Below are positions 4,539-22,514 of a stretch of 64,000 nt of DNA, piece by piece (the first letter of the stretch is position 1; every line of letters starts with the position of its first letter). The stretch is from Schizochytrium sp. TIO01 (Eukaryota > Protista > Bigyra: Labyrinthulomycetes). The notes under the pieces are model-generated. The model did no database searches and was not told the DNA's origin. It saw only the letters and a program-made list of their open reading frames with translations. Made by a program: the position numbers and the translations under genes. The stretch spans positions 558,001-622,000 of the forward strand of contig SMSO01000004.1 of assembly GCA_004764695.1 (NCBI GenBank), written 5' to 3'.

Positions 4539-4610
4539 GAAATAATTCCCAATACAAAGTTGGTAGGAAGGTACCTAGGTAAGACAGAATTTACCAAGGT
4601 TAACCATCAT

Positions 4611-4667
4611 TCTCACTTGTCAGAGGCAACTCCTATCAATCTTTTAAACTTGAGTAAAAACCAAGCC
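4611..4667 (+). repeat. Single arm of the ~55-bp repeat family
   Basis: TCTCACTTGTCAGAGGCAACTCCTATCAATCTTTTAAACTTGAGTAAAAACCAAGCC is similar to 4486-4538, to 8899-8957 and to the reverse complement of 8808-8862. Confidence 0.75.
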
Positions 4668-8795: not shown

Positions 8796-8957
8796 CTGGC
8801 TTGAACATTTTTTTACCCAAGCTATAAGATTTTTAAGGAGCTCCCTCTGACTAGTATGAGTGAACAATAAGAACGCAAAACTCAAGTCAAAACAAGCACT
8901 CTCACTAGTCAGAGGCAACTCTTTGACTTCTTTTAACTTAGTCAAAAGTCAAGCCAG
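8796..8957. repeat. Imperfect palindrome, hairpin copy 2 (best preserved), ~60-bp arms and ~35-bp loop
   Basis: Inner arms CCTCTGACTAGT (8844-8855) and ACTAGTCAGAGG (8904-8915) pair perfectly. Outer CTGGCTTGA (8796) and TCAAGCCAG (8949) also pair. Confidence 0.8.
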
Positions 8958-13653: not shown

Positions 13654-16600
13654 ATGCGTAGGGCCAAGCCGTGTTTATTATGCTATGTACCTTGCAAAGT
13701 TTGCCATGTAAACGTCTTTAGGCAAAGCAAACCCAAAACAAAATCGAAAGCTAAGTCTACAGGCTTCGGCTTAGAAGTGGCTCAGAGCAGAGAAGCACTT
13801 GAAGCGACCATGCAACAAGCTAAGAATGCGCTTTCCCAAGGAAGGATAGATGCTGCTGCACTAGGCTTTTGCGGTGAGGGCGGCCTCCAGTTCATTATTC
13901 TTGCTATCAATTCTGAAAAGCACATTATACATTCTCTTAATATGAGCGGAACTAATATCGATGACAATCTAGTTCTTTACCACTTAGCTCCTGCGCTCCG
14001 TGCGTCCCGCAACAAAATCAAGGAGTTAGATCTGAGCAATAACTCAAAGGTTGGCTGTAGAGGTGCACAAGCAATTCTTTCAATTCCTGGCATCACTAAG
14101 CTGTGCTTAGATGAACTTGATCTAAGAGAAGCAAAATCCGACTTCTTTGGCTCTATGCTGGATCAAAGTGACGTTGAAGATCTTTCGATTCGGAATTGCC
14201 ATCTTCCTTCCGAAACTGTTGCCACGTTAGCTTCTGTAATGGAAACTAGGAACAGAATCTCCAAAGTGAATTGCGAGGGGAACCAGGCATTTACCATGGA
14301 GAACATAAATCAACTGCTCCAGGCTGTCTGCAGTAGAAAAAATCAACTTCATATATCAATTGGACTTCAAGATATCCCCGAAGAGCAGCGAAATTCTCTA
14401 ATAAGAAAAATTAACAGTCGTACAATTCTCCACGACTGTGTAAATCTAGCGAGTGATGAAACCAAGAAAAGAGTTACAAGCAGCCATGATGAATCTGCAA
14501 GTAGCAGTGACGAATCTACAAGCGACGATGAGACCGGGAGCGAAGGCGATGAGTCCTGCGATTTTATGTCAGCAGACTCTGAATCTGATTCTGAGTCAGA
14601 CGATGACAATGATCAAGGCGAGGACGATATTGACGATTCTGAAGAGACTATAACCAAGGCTTTTTCCAGTTTGAAGAACAACTACTTTGGAGATGTCCGA
14701 TTTGATTCACGAGAGAAGCGAGCTGCAGTTACTCTAAATCAACTAGATTGGAAACGCTGGATCCCAGTTATCAATGAGATGGCGAAGCTTTTGAGGCCTG
14801 AAAAGACCTTTGAGTCGCTTGTGCATCTTCGAATAGGTTGTGCGCTTATGGCAAATGACTCGGAAGCTGAAAGTCTCATTGATATCCACTCAGACGTTTT
14901 CAAAAAGTTTTGGAGACGAGGCCGAGCAGTAATCTCATGTATTATGCAAGGTGGGAAGACCAAACGTGCAATATTTTACAGAGGCTTCATTCACGGCGGT
15001 GTGTGTAACAAGCATGTTGTTGTCCTTGCAAACTCGCAGCGCACAGCCTATCATGACATGCGTAGTGCTGTTAGTGACATGAATAAGCTCTACAAGAGGG
15101 AGGTATTGAAAAAAATGGCTTCAAGCAACAAACACAAACATGGTATGGGTAGAAAGATAAAATCCGATCGGAATAGTTACATTCCAGAAAGTGTATTCCT
15201 CTACACTCGACTCAACCAAGTAGAAAATGTGTTATCGATCCAAAACAAGAGCCGCTCGGAAGTTCACTTTAACATTCGCTTAGCTAACGTTGCCGGCATT
15301 CGGAGCCTAAACGACCCCTTTCGGGGTAAACTTGGCCAAGTGTTCAATTCAGAAACTACCCATCTTATACTTGATGAATCGCACGAAGCCATGACAAAAA
15401 CTCAATTTGCTAGAGGCATCTGCATGGAACTTCAACATTGGGCGGATGTGTCTTTCGTAACAGCAACTCCAAGCTCGAATTTTATCCTTGACAGCAAGCT
15501 TGGAGATGAATTCACTCCTGTGGATATCCGTCCGCGCCCCGGATACTATCTCTATGGGCCTAATATGAAGGATCCCTCGAAGGACTCTTTGGATGATGAT
15601 CAACAACGTATTCTTGTAGTTAATCATATAGATGTGGACAAGTTCTTCAATGGAAACATTTTAAATAAAAAACCATCCAAGCACAACTTCCCCTACAGTA
15701 GTTTCCCACTTACCCAGCGCGAACAGAAAAAAAGGGAAAAAGAACGCAAAAAAGACCAGGCTTTGGAGGGTGAAAATGCGAGGTCAGAAAAATCAGACTG
15801 CATTATCCCAGAAAATCAGATTGAAGCGCTCAAGACCTCGTTTGGCAAGAATTTAGACCGCTCTAAGTTTCTGATTGTACTGAATGATTTTTCATCTACA
15901 AGCTTTCAAAAGAATCGAAGCATTAACATTGGGCACGGGAAGATTGCACTTTGGCTAGCACAGCATGCCATCAATACCCTTAATAAATTACAGCCAAAGG
16001 CAAAGGCAAAGTCGAAGGCAGAGTCCAAGTGGAAGCGTGCGTCTATTGTTACGTATTCTGTGTACAACCACTGTCGTGTCGACAATCGTTTTGGTAAGCC
16101 ACATATCTATATGAATTCGGCACTTTGCCGTCATTTAGCAACCATTCGTGTTGGAGAGTTCGCCTCGAAATTTGTGACATTGGATGCCGCTGAAGCAAAC
16201 TCAAAATGTCTTATCACACAGCGGCAACAGGAGGATTTTATGTCGTACTTAAAAGCTTTGAAACATGCAGCCGATGTGATATTGAAGAATGCGGACCGAA
16301 AAGGCAGGAATGTAAAAGGCCTCCCTATTCAATGTCGGAGAGATAAACGTTCCAAAACGAGAACTTACGAATTTGAAGTAGCAAAATTCATGGACATTAA
16401 GTTTGTGCTGAGTTTCATTCAACATCTGCATGAGACACGGATGCCAAAAGAGGACGACCGTCCAAACTTGGATTACAGATCATATCCACTGCGAATTGCA
16501 ATCGTTGGCAAGCAGCTCCTCAAACAAGCAATCAATGTGGAATCGAAAGATCGTATAATTCAGCTTACTGATCTTGTTTACCTGCAAAATCCTAACTCTA

Positions 16601-17346
16601 GGATTGACCAAACAAGGATGCTGCAGGCGCTTGGTCGTGTCAACCACGGTTTTAACAGAAAACAGTTCTACACTAGCGCATTCGCGGAACAGAAGTTGGC
16701 AAAGATGGACGAGTTAAAGCAGCTTGAACATATGAGACCCAAAGTCTGGTTACCATCAAGTCTGAAGAGATTTCTTTTCGAAACACCCCAGCTACAACGC
16801 ACTGCCGCAACCCTCAAATCGGGTTCAATTCCGTACTTTCTTGATTGTTTTCATACATTGGAATTGAAGGGGTCTGTTCAAGCAAACGCAGATGGAATGC
16901 GTGAACTCGAGAAGCAAGCCCTTGATGAGACACTAAAGAACCTGCCTCGAAGCAAAACGCAAATCAGGTTCCCCAAAGTCAAGTCATGGGTAAACGGCAT
17001 TTATCAAAGTTTAGCTTCAGCAAAGAATAAATCCTTGTCAGAAGGCGACCGTGTCAGCATAGCTAAGCGTCTAGTAGCTCTGATTAACAACTATGACTAC
17101 CGTCCAGATTTTGACAGTATTCTTGACATTTGCGACAACGAAGATCATGCAACACCTACCGATCGTATGCTCCTCAAATTTTTAAAAGATGACAACATGA
17201 AGGATGAACTCTGGAAAACATTATTTCTAAATCAACGAGGACGCTCATCAAATGCAGGCACGAAGAGAGGGAGAGCAACGCAAGCTGTCAATAGAAACAG
17301 AGATAAGGATAAAGGGGGGCAGAATAAAAAGCTGCGCAAGCGGTAA
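13654..17346 (+). CDS. RNI-like leucine-rich-repeat + acidic linker + Z1-type SF2 (DExH) helicase/ATPase
   Basis: 1230-aa ORF. LRRs: IHSLNMSGTNID, IKELDLSNNSKVG, ITKLCLDELDL, VEDLSIRNCHL, ISKVNCEGNQ. Helicase motifs: ISCIMQGGKT (I), LILDESH (II), VTATPSSNF (III), RPRPGYYLYG, IAIVGKQLL (V), DQTRMLQALGRV (VI). Basic tail KKLRKR. The true start is uncertain: possible TTTAG acceptor near 13720, or Met at 13810. Confidence 0.82.
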   Translation: MRRAKPCLLCYVPCKVCHVNVFRQSKPKTKSKAKSTGFGLEVAQSREALEATMQQAKNALSQGRIDAAALGFCGEGGLQFIILAINSEKHIIHSLNMSGTNIDDNLVLYHLAPALRASRNKIKELDLSNNSKVGCRGAQAILSIPGITKLCLDELDLREAKSDFFGSMLDQSDVEDLSIRNCHLPSETVATLASVMETRNRISKVNCEGNQAFTMENINQLLQAVCSRKNQLHISIGLQDIPEEQRNSLIRKINSRTILHDCVNLASDETKKRVTSSHDESASSSDESTSDDETGSEGDESCDFMSADSESDSESDDDNDQGEDDIDDSEETITKAFSSLKNNYFGDVRFDSREKRAAVTLNQLDWKRWIPVINEMAKLLRPEKTFESLVHLRIGCALMANDSEAESLIDIHSDVFKKFWRRGRAVISCIMQGGKTKRAIFYRGFIHGGVCNKHVVVLANSQRTAYHDMRSAVSDMNKLYKREVLKKMASSNKHKHGMGRKIKSDRNSYIPESVFLYTRLNQVENVLSIQNKSRSEVHFNIRLANVAGIRSLNDPFRGKLGQVFNSETTHLILDESHEAMTKTQFARGICMELQHWADVSFVTATPSSNFILDSKLGDEFTPVDIRPRPGYYLYGPNMKDPSKDSLDDDQQRILVVNHIDVDKFFNGNILNKKPSKHNFPYSSFPLTQREQKKREKERKKDQALEGENARSEKSDCIIPENQIEALKTSFGKNLDRSKFLIVLNDFSSTSFQKNRSINIGHGKIALWLAQHAINTLNKLQPKAKAKSKAESKWKRASIVTYSVYNHCRVDNRFGKPHIYMNSALCRHLATIRVGEFASKFVTLDAAEANSKCLITQRQQEDFMSYLKALKHAADVILKNADRKGRNVKGLPIQCRRDKRSKTRTYEFEVAKFMDIKFVLSFIQHLHETRMPKEDDRPNLDYRSYPLRIAIVGKQLLKQAINVESKDRIIQLTDLVYLQNPNSRIDQTRMLQALGRVNHGFNRKQFYTSAFAEQKLAKMDELKQLEHMRPKVWLPSSLKRFLFETPQLQRTAATLKSGSIPYFLDCFHTLELKGSVQANADGMRELEKQALDETLKNLPRSKTQIRFPKVKSWVNGIYQSLASAKNKSLSEGDRVSIAKRLVALINNYDYRPDFDSILDICDNEDHATPTDRMLLKFLKDDNMKDELWKTLFLNQRGRSSNAGTKRGRATQAVNRNRDKDKGGQNKKLRKR

Positions 17347-18490
17347 AAAAGGAAGGACAAAGCACATATCCCCTTTGAATTGACAAGGACCAACTTCTGG
17401 CGCACAACAGCTCCTATCACTAATTTGTGTCTTGTTGATGTGTGCACATTCATAGCCCTAGAATAATGAAAATAAGAAGAATAATTTTCTGTTGAATGAA
17501 GAAGTTTTGTTCTGTTGCTAGGCATTTTAGTACCCTAAGTTACTTTCTGGTTCATGTTCTGCCACCCCACCTGAATGGCCTAAAGTTGACCTTACTTATC
17601 AGCATTATATATGAGCCTTGTAAAATACGTCGAGTTTATGCTGGACAAAGGGCTAATACCACAGATACAATTACTTTGATTGAGAGTTAGTGATTTCCTG
17701 AAGCGAATCAGCTCTTCCTTCCACACGCTATTCAAGGTTTATGAAATGTTTAAACACTTTTATAATTCCAGGCTTTAAAGACTCGATGCAATACATTAAA
17801 ATTTTGGTGGATCGTTTTGAAGTCTACATGTTTTTGCCTGAGGCGATTTGCTTTGATGAAACAAAACACGTTTTTTTAAAATGCAGGTTTAATTTTTATA
17901 CTTTATATTTGCTCTAAACCTTCTTTTTGTCTGTACATAAAAGAAACTGAAGATAGTTCTTTGCGAGAATTTAAACTGACGTGATCTTTTGGTTGTTCTT
18001 TACTTGTGAGGGACACCCCCATACAACCCAATCAAATCGGATGCTACTTTCTTTGATAGTGTCATATATTCATTAAAGTTCCCATTAGTTGCACGATGCG
18101 AAGCCTTTCAATTTAACGGAGCTTGTCAACTCTGCTGAAAATCCTCAAAATGATTGTGGATCGTCTACACCTATACGAACATGTAAAGTTGATGGTTTAG
18201 TCGGTTTTACGACCGAACACTACACTGCTGTCATACAATGCGCACCGCATATCTTGACAAAATAAAGGAAATTTTCTTTGTGAATAGTTTCGACTAACAA
18301 GGCACATGTTTTTGCATAATGTGTAATGATTCTTCATACATCGTGATTTACTTGAATATACGCCCAACTTGAAGTAAAAAGAACTAGATTACAATTCTAT
18401 TTCATATTGTTTATTATTTTCTTTTCAAGTTGTAAACAGAATTATTATTGCATACACAGGGCCTATATAGTTTTTATATAGTTTGTATTT

Positions 18491-18498
18491 AAAAAAAA
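18491..18498 (-). terminator. RNA polymerase III oligo-T terminator of tRNA-Lys
   Basis: T8 run on the minus strand, 3 nt after the discriminator base. Confidence 0.8.
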
Positions 18499-18501
18499 TT
18501 G

Positions 18502-18573
18502 TTCCCAATGAGGGGATCGAACCCTCGACCATTTGATTAAGAGTCAAACGCTCTACCGCTGAGCTAACCGGGA
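18502..18573 (-). tRNA. trnK-CTT: tRNA-Lys (anticodon CTT)
   Basis: The reverse complement TCCCGGT TA GCTC AGCGGTA GAGC G TTTGA CTCTTAA TCAAA TGGTC GAGGG TTCGATC CCCTC ATTGGGA A folds as a full cloverleaf with A and B boxes. Confidence 0.96.
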
Positions 18574-21500
18574 TTCCTTGAAGGAGTTTGATGCACCGAA
18601 GCATCGTCTATTTCCCATAATTGAGACGCTGATGTGCCCTGACACATATATACCTTGTATATTACACATAACATTTTATTTATTTAAAAATTCGGCGATG
18701 ATAGTATGATGCGCTGAGTTCGATGTAGAATAAGTAATGTCTTAAGAGGCATATTTGTAGTTGATATCTTCATCAATTAGAAAGGAGGACCACCAATCAA
18801 GATGGCAAGTCACACGACATAAACGAGCACATTAATGGGAGGAGCTTCAGAGAGTTTCACTCCTCCAGTTAAATTTGCACTAATATCATTTGTCTATATT
18901 ATTTAATGATCTAACAGATACATAGAGTTACCACAATTCTGAAGTAAACCAATCAATCTCTTTATGGATAATAAAATATGGATTTAATTTATGCCTAGAA
19001 AAGATCCTAATTAGGTTCTATCATTTACGCTGTATGGCTAGGGCGTTATTGGTGGCTGCCCGTCTTGAATATCTCAATCAAACCAAAGTGATAGCAAAAC
19101 TTCATCTTGAATCTTGTATTGCTTTTGTTTAAAAGATGAAAAGTATTAAAACGAGGAGTTGAAAGCGAAATTAATAGGAACAAGCTTCTCCTTTCCGGTT
19201 GGGACATTAACAAAACAAACATATCCTTCTCGGTTGTATTGTCATATCCCCTGGTTGATTGAGCAGTATTTCCATTTGCTTTGTTTGCACTGGGGCCTAT
19301 GCCACGTTGTGGCTCGAGATCCTAATCCTTTATTTTCACCTGAGATTGGATAGCCTTCGTTTTCCAGGAGTTTGATCTTTTAAATGGGCTTAGAATTAGT
19401 ATATTTACTATTGACGACTCTTCATTGAGATTCAATGCGTTAGTATGGGCAGTGTTAAGATGCGCTTAGGATTATATTATGGGTATGCCTTTCAGTGATT
19501 AACAAATGTCAACACTTGAAGCAAGCAAGTATTCGAAATAACTCCTCATCCAATTGATTGATTGTAGCTAAATGAACCCAGCCATGATATGAATTCTGGA
19601 TATTCATTAAAGCTTCTCAAGGAGCTCCGTTACGGAATACCTTTTCATTCGCATTCGGAACTGTTCACTTCATCTTCCCGTGTTGGACAAGCTCCAACTT
19701 TTAATAACACTTCAATAGCTGCTCGCTAAAAAGATTATGATATGAACCCCTCAGGGGACTCGAAATAGATGAACCAATGCAATGAATACGAGCGTATTCG
19801 AATGATAGATATATTATATACATGAAGAGAGACACGAGGTTTCTCGAAACAATGTTGCTCATGTCATGATTCCCGGTCGATTGTAATATGTACAGTCTGA
19901 CGCGAAATGATGAAACTAACTAACTAAATAGTATTGAGGTAGTTGAGTTACTCTACTGAATAATTAATTCATTTACGTTTATTACATATAATGTATAGAC
20001 AATGTATAGATTAATCTTACTATTATTGTTTGTTAATTACGCATGTTTTATATTTTTTGAAGAGGATTCATACTATCTCATGCTTTGTGCTTGAATTATC
20101 TTAAAATAACAAAATAATACATAAATTGGTTAATTTAACACAAAATATATAATTTATCAATAATAATTGAATGATTATTTATTAAATATTAAAAATGAAT
20201 TATATTTTGTTTATTTTTCAATAAAATATATTTATTGTGTTGAAATTGAATTAAAGTACTATCATAATCAGGAAATTTTAACATATAGTAAGAAGATACT
20301 AGTTAATATAATAATAGTGTTGTGATTGTTTCTTAAGATCTCAGTTAGTCATGCAAAGGCCTAGTAAAGAAAATTCTTTTCACTAAATAAAAGTGAAGGT
20401 CTGTTTACTTTTAAAATTCCATAAGGTCTGGGTCAGGTGCGAAATTAAAAAATACCCTTTTGTAGAACGAACCTGTTGTGTGTTTGTTTGTTTTCACACT
20501 TCAATCAGTCATCTACATACAATCAAATGTTGCATTTTCAAGAGTATCGATCATTTCTTTTCTTATCCTTCTTCGTTGCATCTCCAGTATTAATTGATTC
20601 CTTTTCCAATCAAACAAATGTCAAGCAAGTTAGTTTTTTCACAAGTTTGAGGCAATTCACGTTTTGTTGGGTGAGAAGCTATTCGAGAAAGAATCATTGC
20701 CATGAGTTTGTATAGAATAAACATAGAAAAAAAAAAAAAAAAGTAGAACGTCTCTGTTCTGCACAAATGTACAGACTAGACAGCGTCTATCATTTATTGC
20801 AGTTAAAATTATCGTGGTGTTAAGTAAGTTAAATGGTGCAGTACAAAGAGAGCTATTAAATTTTGATACCATTTGGTCCTTTTCTCATTGCTGAGATCTC
20901 CAATCGAAGGAACCAGTGGACAAGACATTGCTAGAGTTCTTGGTGTCCCTTTATAAAACCCCAGTAGACATAAGGTTTACAATTGAGCAAGGATGAGTCT
21001 GGCTGCCGGAGCCAAGAACTAGAAGTGAGAATACATAGATATCACTTGTAATACATCCAAGCATGGTGTAACTTGAATCGATGGTTGGAGAAGTTGGATT
21101 AATAACCTAACCCCAACGATTCTCTCTAACTTTCAAGAATGTCTTAATCTCCTAAATTACTACATGAATCCATCTGTCCTGAAATTAATTATCCAGCTAA
21201 CTCTTAAAGTCAACCTTCTTAAGGCCTTCATCAAGCCTCTTGCCTTCGTCTTTACAGTCAGTCAACCTCAGGCTAATCAGAATCACCTCTCAGCACTCAT
21301 ACTAACTCAAGTACATGACTTGCTTAGTTTTCTGGTTTTAAATAAAAGTGAAGCTGCTATATTTAATCACTGTTACAATAAAGGGCCAGCGAACTCGATC
21401 AAGTCAAGCTTTTATAATGTAATAATGATATTATTTCTTGCTTGTATAGTACACTGCTTGGTTCTATTACGCTTTAGAACGAATGTTGAAATCGAACTTA

Positions 21501-22514
21501 ATCACTTACCAAATAAAAGATCGTTTACAATGAGATGATAGTTGCGTACATCTTCACGGGTATTGAGTAGAATGCAGGTTTGTTAATTTTTAAATATAAC
21601 TACAACAGACAACAGATAGCAATAACATACACTAGTTACTATTTAAACATGAATAAACTAGATATTGCCGAACTACATTCAATAGTGTTATGAAACTTAA
21701 ATCTGTAAGGTTTCATTAGCCGTCTTCTAAAGCATAAGCAAGCTCTTTCGTCTTGTAAATGAGTATAAAAACAAAAGATATATCTTATGTATTGTCGTCT
21801 TATATTTGTAACCGTTTTGTTCATCTTATTTCGAATCAGGCCTGCCTCCTTCCCTCGTTCTTTTCTCAATGAACTGACTTTTTGAGTCTATCTACCAATA
21901 CAGATAGAACAAATTGTGTGATATTGTTATTTGATTTTACCACCGATAAATTCTCAGTTGCAAGCTCGGTATACCGCATGAAGAAGTGTATATGCTAATT
22001 TGAATTTAAATAATATATTTTAAAAAGGGGTGGGAGACATTGTTGCTTCCCGAGGCGTACTTTGATGATAATGTTGAGAGGCGAAAGATTATATTGTAGA
22101 AAAATAAATAAAAAAATAAATAAGAAAATAAGAAACGGAACAAAACATGCTGAGTGACAGCACATTATCCTTTGAGTTCAGGTAAGAATACTGATAGAAG
22201 TAGCATCTGACTGATAAGAATTAAACAAATTTGAAAAGAAAGGAATTAAATCCTAGAGGCACTTTATGACTTCTGATTTTAATATTATTACTAATATTAC
22301 TATTACTGTTAATACTACTATTATTACTATCAGATGAAGTGACCGACCCAGACTACCGATAGGTATCTAAGATACTAGCAGTTTTTAATTGACAGCTCAC
22401 ACGATCGAAGACTGACTGAGCTGGTTGTCGGTCCCTTTGCAACATACGTGGAGCAAACGGAGCCTATATCTCCCTTCCTTAAAGTCCTTTTGAAAACAGT
22501 ACCTGAATTTGTGA

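Follow-up and report, generated by a model that had tools for sequence, protein, structure and literature searches.

A probable lineage-restricted SF2 ATPase with N-terminal leucine-rich repeats in a Schizochytrium genome

In RIG-I-like and Dicer-type helicases (MDA5, LGP2 and DRH-1), a sensor or signalling module is joined to a superfamily 2 (SF2) motor that consists of tandem RecA domains with an insertion domain, Hel2i, between the two cores. NLR and STAND receptors combine a NACHT or NB-ARC nucleoside triphosphatase (NTPase) with leucine-rich repeats (LRRs), which are placed C-terminally. Type I and ISP restriction translocases and other ResIII (PF04851) SF2 ATPases have a GxGKT Walker A motif, a DExH-type motif II and Helicase_C-type C-cores; in the Z1-type (PF10593) proteins, a Gln replaces the first Gly of GxGKT. 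Labyrinthulomycetes host RNA viruses, DNA viruses and mirusviruses and, to our knowledge, almost nothing is known of their defence biology. Here we analysed a window of 64,000 nucleotides (nt) from Schizochytrium sp. TIO01 (contig SMSO01000004.1, positions 558,001 to 622,000) and describe one of its genes, the product of which we call protein A. We conclude that protein A is probably a lineage-restricted SF2 ATPase of a thraustochytrid family, composed of LRRs, an acidic linker, a two-RecA motor and a C-terminal basic tail. It represents a new SF2 family and a new LRR–helicase architecture (Table 1).

A preliminary description of the window had quoted eight motifs, all of which are located in protein A: MQGGKT (residues 431–436, nt 14944–14961), VVVLA (455–459), LILDESH (571–577, nt 15364–15384), VTATPSSNF (602–610, nt 15457–15483), RPRPGYYLYG (626–635, nt 15529–15558), IAIVGKQLL (948–956, nt 16495–16521), DQTRMLQALGRV (985–996, nt 16606–16641; the span with motif VI, QALGR) and RPKVWL (1028–1033, nt 16735–16752). 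A conserved RSINIGH occupies the motif-IV position of the C-core (nt 15916–15936). Read from these motifs (Q-x-G-K-T in Walker A, then DESH, TAT and Q-x-x-G-R), the ATP site is intact. Ten diverse members of the family all keep the D and E of motif II; near-invariance extends to Walker A (Q, G, K and T), the His of DExH, motif III (T-A-T) and, in the C-core, an N…H pair.

The AlphaFold (AF2) model of residues 380–1060, built from a 16-sequence alignment, reached a predicted local distance difference test (pLDDT) score of 75.5 and a predicted template-modelling (pTM) score of 0.78; a 4-sequence alignment gave a pLDDT of only 38. The model predicts the tandem RecA fold that had been anticipated, with motifs I, II (DExH), III, V and VI, together with a K/E-rich disordered loop behind the N-core (residues ~666–714) and a helical and β-hairpin insertion of ~110 residues within the C-core (~817–927). 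We discounted a sub-threshold match to DUF5081 (E = 0.0039), which lies within the low-complexity K/E loop. The top Foldseek matches in the PDB were all SF2 helicases (MDA5, BLM, DRH-1, LGP2, Pol-theta helicase, Hef, FANCM, RIG-I and HamB), matched over both RecA domains, with a best E value of 2.4e-5. Pfam, NCBIfam, PADLOC, PHROGs and a PDB sequence search gave no significant match for the motor, which supports the earlier placement of protein A outside the characterised eukaryotic helicase families. Against PDB sequences, the best match of the family profile reached only E = 0.23, to motifs II–III of ISWI.

The motor had also been described as a Z1-type helicase, a reading that is not supported as stated. 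We compared profiles with hhalign, using a PF10593 panel of 17 genuine proteins out of 402 bacterial genomes and six control panels: ResIII (long and short), SNF2, DinG (Helicase_C_2) and DEAD/Helicase_C (short and long). In the whole-family comparison with PF10593, the best local segment extended from motif V past motif VI; at a low maximum-accuracy (MAC) threshold, a single co-linear path passed through Walker A, motifs II and III, the P-x-x-Y element and motifs V and VI. The N-core scored 43.8–46.2 against the ResIII panels, 31.7–31.8 against the DEAD panels, 28.4 against DinG and 24.8 against SNF2. Scores of the C-core against the six control panels were 14.3–22.5; reversed or column-shuffled null profiles scored 13–20.

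Protein A and the PF10593 proteins are alike in their motif order (I, II, III, P-x-x-Y, V and VI, co-linear in a single profile alignment), their rare Gln-containing Walker A, their ResIII-like N-core, a C-core too divergent for Helicase_C models, a C-core insertion that starts at a conserved His in the motif-IV position, and an extra C-terminal domain. The H/H motif and helical C-core insertion of PF10593 proteins are only approximated: the family of protein A has a conserved N…N-x-G-H but no H/H pair, and its insertion lies in the same topological place. The short Q-x-x-R form of motif VI is not shared, as the family of protein A has the canonical Q-x-x-G-R, not Q-M-G-R. Protein A also differs in its much larger inserts (including the K/E-rich loop), its eukaryotic host and its N-terminal LRRs and acidic linker, and we recognised no gene for a nuclease or methyltransferase that would be its partner. 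The type I, ISP and other ResIII ATPases provide the best N-core scores and share a DExH-type motif II; however, against their Helicase_C-type C-cores the C-core of protein A scores at null level (16.5–22.5), and its Walker A is QxGKT rather than GxGKT.

The family is small. A word-indexed search of 5.8 billion proteins returned two relatives of protein A, and an exhaustive profile search (HMMER) over 1.84 billion representatives returned 13 proteins at E ≤ 0.001, among which the only named ones are GBG24439.1 and GBG29393.1 from the thraustochytrid Hondaea fermentalgiana. Repeating the protein search with a 10-sequence alignment added one relative, P0023; only two related metagenome loci were found, both of the P0002 type. 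The Schizochytrium assembly (64 Mb in 37 contigs) encodes three paralogues, A, B and C, which are located on two chromosomes and are deeply diverged (≤24% identical). Paralogue B has lost its Walker A (SPLKLDY where protein A has MQGGKT), has TTS as motif III and a degenerate motif VI, and retains DEAH and the C-core motifs; judged by these residues, it is likely to be a pseudo-ATPase partner. A 46-nt direct repeat (78% identity) is present in the intergenic DNA at the 3′ and 5′ ends of the paralogue B gene (4602–4647 and 8891–8936). Paralogue C has an acidic N terminus and no LRR, and its gene adjoins a DEAD-box helicase gene (L006 8533–9798).

None of the other family members scanned has an LRR; this fusion was seen in protein A only. 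A different N-terminal module is found in P0013, a public protein of 1,131 amino acids (aa) in which a TIR domain (TIR_2, 4.6e-13) lies ~490 residues upstream of the family N-core. The Glu of the TIR C-x-x-E-L stretch is present, and ~490 unassigned residues separate the domain from the QGGKT motor. P0013 is probably truncated, since it ends within the motor, and the TIR–helicase fusion, a single predicted protein, may be a gene-model artefact. In the subfamily of P0013, P0008, P0012 and P0023 have Cys-rich, zinc-ribbon-like C-terminal tails.

The preliminary description had placed ribonuclease-inhibitor-type LRRs and an acidic Ser/Asp/Glu spacer ahead of the motor, and both are borne out. For residues 40–270, the best PDB sequence match was ribonuclease inhibitor 4per (E = 0.0039), which aligned in repeat register four times, and the ESM Atlas neighbours of residues 60–265 were mostly LRR_6 clusters (0.94–0.95). 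Residues 92–211 share 30% identity (E = 4e-8) with a second protein encoded in this genome, which itself passes Pfam LRR_6 (2.1e-7). By profile and homology, the block thus reads as tandem ~28-residue LxxLxLxxN repeats of the ribonuclease-inhibitor type; Pfam LRR_6, LRR_1 and LRR_LRWD1 were all below threshold on protein A itself. A similar acidic stretch precedes the motor in the homologues P0002 and P0003. The LRR relative from the same genome (L189:1–2133, minus strand; G000:C13 ~5061712–5063844) is an open frame ≥711 aa long with ribonuclease-inhibitor-type LRRs (LRR_6) near its N terminus, the closest in this genome to those of protein A; the remainder of the frame has no Pfam assignment.

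Table 1. Protein A, its predicted domains, its paralogues and neighbouring genes (coordinates in the window unless a contig is named)
Feature	Coordinates	Strand	Remarks
Whole gene, protein A	13654..17346	+	1230-codon intronless ORF, ATG start, no internal stop (ORF list)
Ribonuclease-inhibitor-type LRRs, ~5–6 repeats	13924..14367	+	Residues ~91–238; 25–30 residues per repeat
Acidic Ser/Asp/Glu-rich linker	14464..14649	+	Residues ~271–332; 68% D/E/S
RecA-like N-core	14926..15573	+	Residues ~425–640; Walker A MQGGKT, motif II LILDESH, motif III VTATP, family motif PRPGYYLYG
RecA-like C-core with insertion	15811..16773	+	Residues ~720–1040; motif V IAIVGKQLL, motif VI QALGR, RPKVWL
C-terminal ~190 residues, no family match	16774..17343	+	Read from sequence; ends in basic KKLRKR tail (17326–17343)
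Paralogue B, 1183 aa	4883..8434	-	24% identity over 734 residues, BLASTP E 6e-30
Paralogue C, 1078 aa	L006:3864-7100 = G000:C24:3423864-3427100	-	CQSGKT / ILLDESQ / ITATP
UvrD-like SF1 helicase, 708 aa	10173..12299	+	Between paralogues B and A; Pfam UvrD-helicase 9e-17
ThiF/E1-like fusion, 1257 aa	392..4165	-	Central adenylation domain PF00899, 3e-25

We propose that ATP hydrolysis by protein A would be stimulated by nucleic acid, most likely double-stranded DNA, and that hydrolysis would drive translocation or remodelling, probably in the nucleus; the C-terminal KKLRKR looks like a nuclear localisation signal. The LRR domain would bind a protein partner or ligand, thereby recruiting or gating the motor. 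A putative function in the surveillance or defence of the genome would agree with the kinship and with the existence of a TIR-carrying relative. Genome defence or immune sensing is argued for circumstantially by that relative, by the patchy, fast-evolving family, by the kinship with restriction enzymes and by the neighbouring genes; we consider a function in repair or chromatin roughly equally likely. The gene is one of four large open reading frames (ORFs) in a run (the E1-like fusion, paralogue B, the UvrD-like helicase and protein A) that, on sequence, looks like a defence island, and the UvrD-like helicase may be functionally linked to protein A. With an LRR in protein A and a TIR domain in a relative, the family offers a concrete, testable candidate for innate immunity in labyrinthulomycetes.

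Several results weigh against this picture. PF10593 gave no match to protein A (E ≤ 0.1), to paralogue C or P0002 (E ≤ 10), or anywhere in the whole genome in six frames, with Corynebacterium glutamicum as a positive control. The whole-family profile comparison, in which the secondary-structure term was absent, gave an HH probability of only 23%, and the structure searches favour no single SF2 subfamily. In protein A we found no effector domain, nuclease or otherwise. A P0002-type homologue on metagenome contig L144 has no UvrD-like or E1-like neighbour, and its neighbours are ordinary eukaryotic genes (an M14 peptidase, PP2A-B56, a family-3 G-protein-coupled receptor, a kinase and an importin-like gene); the immediate neighbours of paralogue C likewise include neither a UvrD-like nor an E1-like gene. 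The local cluster is therefore not conserved.

It is possible, although doubtful, that protein A is a repair or chromatin helicase of the housekeeping type. Its basic C-terminal tail and acidic, CK2-like linker are typical of nuclear proteins, a UvrD-like helicase gene is adjacent, and the top VIA matches are the repair helicases DinG, Lhr, FANCM, XPD and Hel308; the weak profile match to ISWI points the same way. A housekeeping helicase is expected to be widespread, yet the 1.84 billion representatives contained only the 13 relatives, and this genome holds three paralogues that have diverged strongly, including a catalytically dead one.

A second alternative, which we regard as rather unlikely, is a helicase-based innate immune sensor. 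The LRR would then recognise a ligand derived from a pathogen or from modified self; the SF2 motor would either be the switch, driven by nucleotide, or detect foreign nucleic acid in the manner of RIG-I-like receptors; and relatives would have TIR in exchange for the N-terminal module, in order to signal. The confinement of the LRR fusion to protein A among the members scanned is consistent with such a sensor, as are the TIR domain of P0013 with its C-x-x-E-L Glu, the tiny, patchy and fast-diverging family with an ATP-dead paralogue next door, the restriction-enzyme motors as nearest kin, the RIG-I-like, Dicer and Hachiman helicases among the top structural matches, and the GajB-like UvrD helicase and E1-like fusion as neighbours. 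However, the TIR fusion is one predicted protein only, the structural matches to RIG-I-like receptors are level with those to repair helicases, the neighbourhood is not conserved at L144 or at paralogue C, and ribonuclease-inhibitor-type LRRs are common protein-binding modules of housekeeping proteins. Nor is the LRR hypervariable between strains: P0014, a full-length public protein of 1,230 aa that is 99.3% identical to protein A, has 8 substitutions, of which one is in the LRR, and we set aside the idea of a hypervariable LRR as unsupported.

The described receptors differ from protein A in specific ways. RIG-I-like and Dicer-type helicases share with it the SF2 tandem RecA domains plus an insertion domain, as well as the joining of a sensor or signalling module to a helicase, and were the top Foldseek matches. 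There is, however, no sequence-level relation, and the template-modelling scores (TM-scores) are low (0.22–0.33); the insertion of protein A lies inside the C-core rather than between the cores, and protein A has neither a CARD nor a CTD, with the LRR in the place of the CARD. Neither Hel2i nor a C-terminal RNA-binding domain was recognised in protein A, and no Pfam family of RIG-I-like receptors matched it. The NLR and STAND receptors resemble it in pairing LRRs with a P-loop NTPase, and in the TIR domain of one relative. The NTPase of protein A is nevertheless an SF2 helicase and not a STAND ATPase (no NACHT or NB-ARC match in Pfam), and its LRR is N-terminal. The label ‘NLR-like’ is plausible only as an analogy.

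A recent horizontal gain from a giant virus, a mirusvirus or a bacterium, possibly as an integrated element with the UvrD-like and E1-like genes, is improbable. The ESM Atlas clusters nearest to the motor are hypothetical proteins of Nucleocytoviricota (0.96), the top BFVD matches are giant-virus helicases (E = 8e-6), and the UvrD-like neighbour matches the phage family phrog_1967 over nearly its full length (6.5e-57). The giant-virus structural scores are, however, no better than those of cellular SF2 helicases, and a viral origin is thus only a lead. No IMG/VR contig encodes a relative of protein A, sequence matches are few and the named ones come only from a thraustochytrid, the Pfam scans of ORFs turned up no viral hallmark gene, and the GC content of the gene is close to that of its flanks. 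The paralogues lie scattered over two chromosomes and have diverged deeply, indicating long residence in the genome. A transposon or integrated element was rejected, as a repeat search over 1–19 kb detected neither inverted repeats nor element boundaries flanking the gene.

That the ORF is a chance frame or a decaying pseudogene is hardly tenable: the one point in its favour is that protein A lacks database annotation, whereas the 3.7-kb frame stays open, its catalytic motifs are kept across relatives at 17–43% identity, substitutions in a diverged strain are skewed to third codon positions, and strains from 11 studies retain it intact. The stretch is present in 22 public runs from these studies, which are RNA by guess only. 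In the diverged strain, 44 places differ and 22 of the 28 listed differences are at third codon positions, indicating purifying selection. Four runs (from four studies) each yielded one contig that extends from 13738–13744 to 17428–17919 with zero joints, and the gene is therefore without introns. The contigs are gene-sized and vary at their 3′ ends, as transcripts would, but this does not prove transcription. All four begin ~85 nt past the first ATG, and the upstream DNA is AT-rich; translation may thus start at Met53 (nt 13810) if the contigs represent RNA.

In the remainder of the four-ORF run, the E1-like protein also matches CBASS Cap2-type ‘E1–E2’ and BilD defence models and has large flanks without a Pfam match. 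The UvrD-like protein matches a GajB-like PADLOC model (1e-21) and has a single distant paralogue in the genome (on C34, 28% identity); a pattern scan of a collection of genome contigs recovered no bacterial relative. Directly downstream of the protein A gene is an AT-rich stretch without long ORFs (18000–22000, GC content 0.32–0.36). The window is eukaryotic and intron-poor, and single long ORFs further downstream encode KIN17, a PLAA/Doa1-type WD40–PFU–PUL protein, arginase and an aldolase–SDR fusion.

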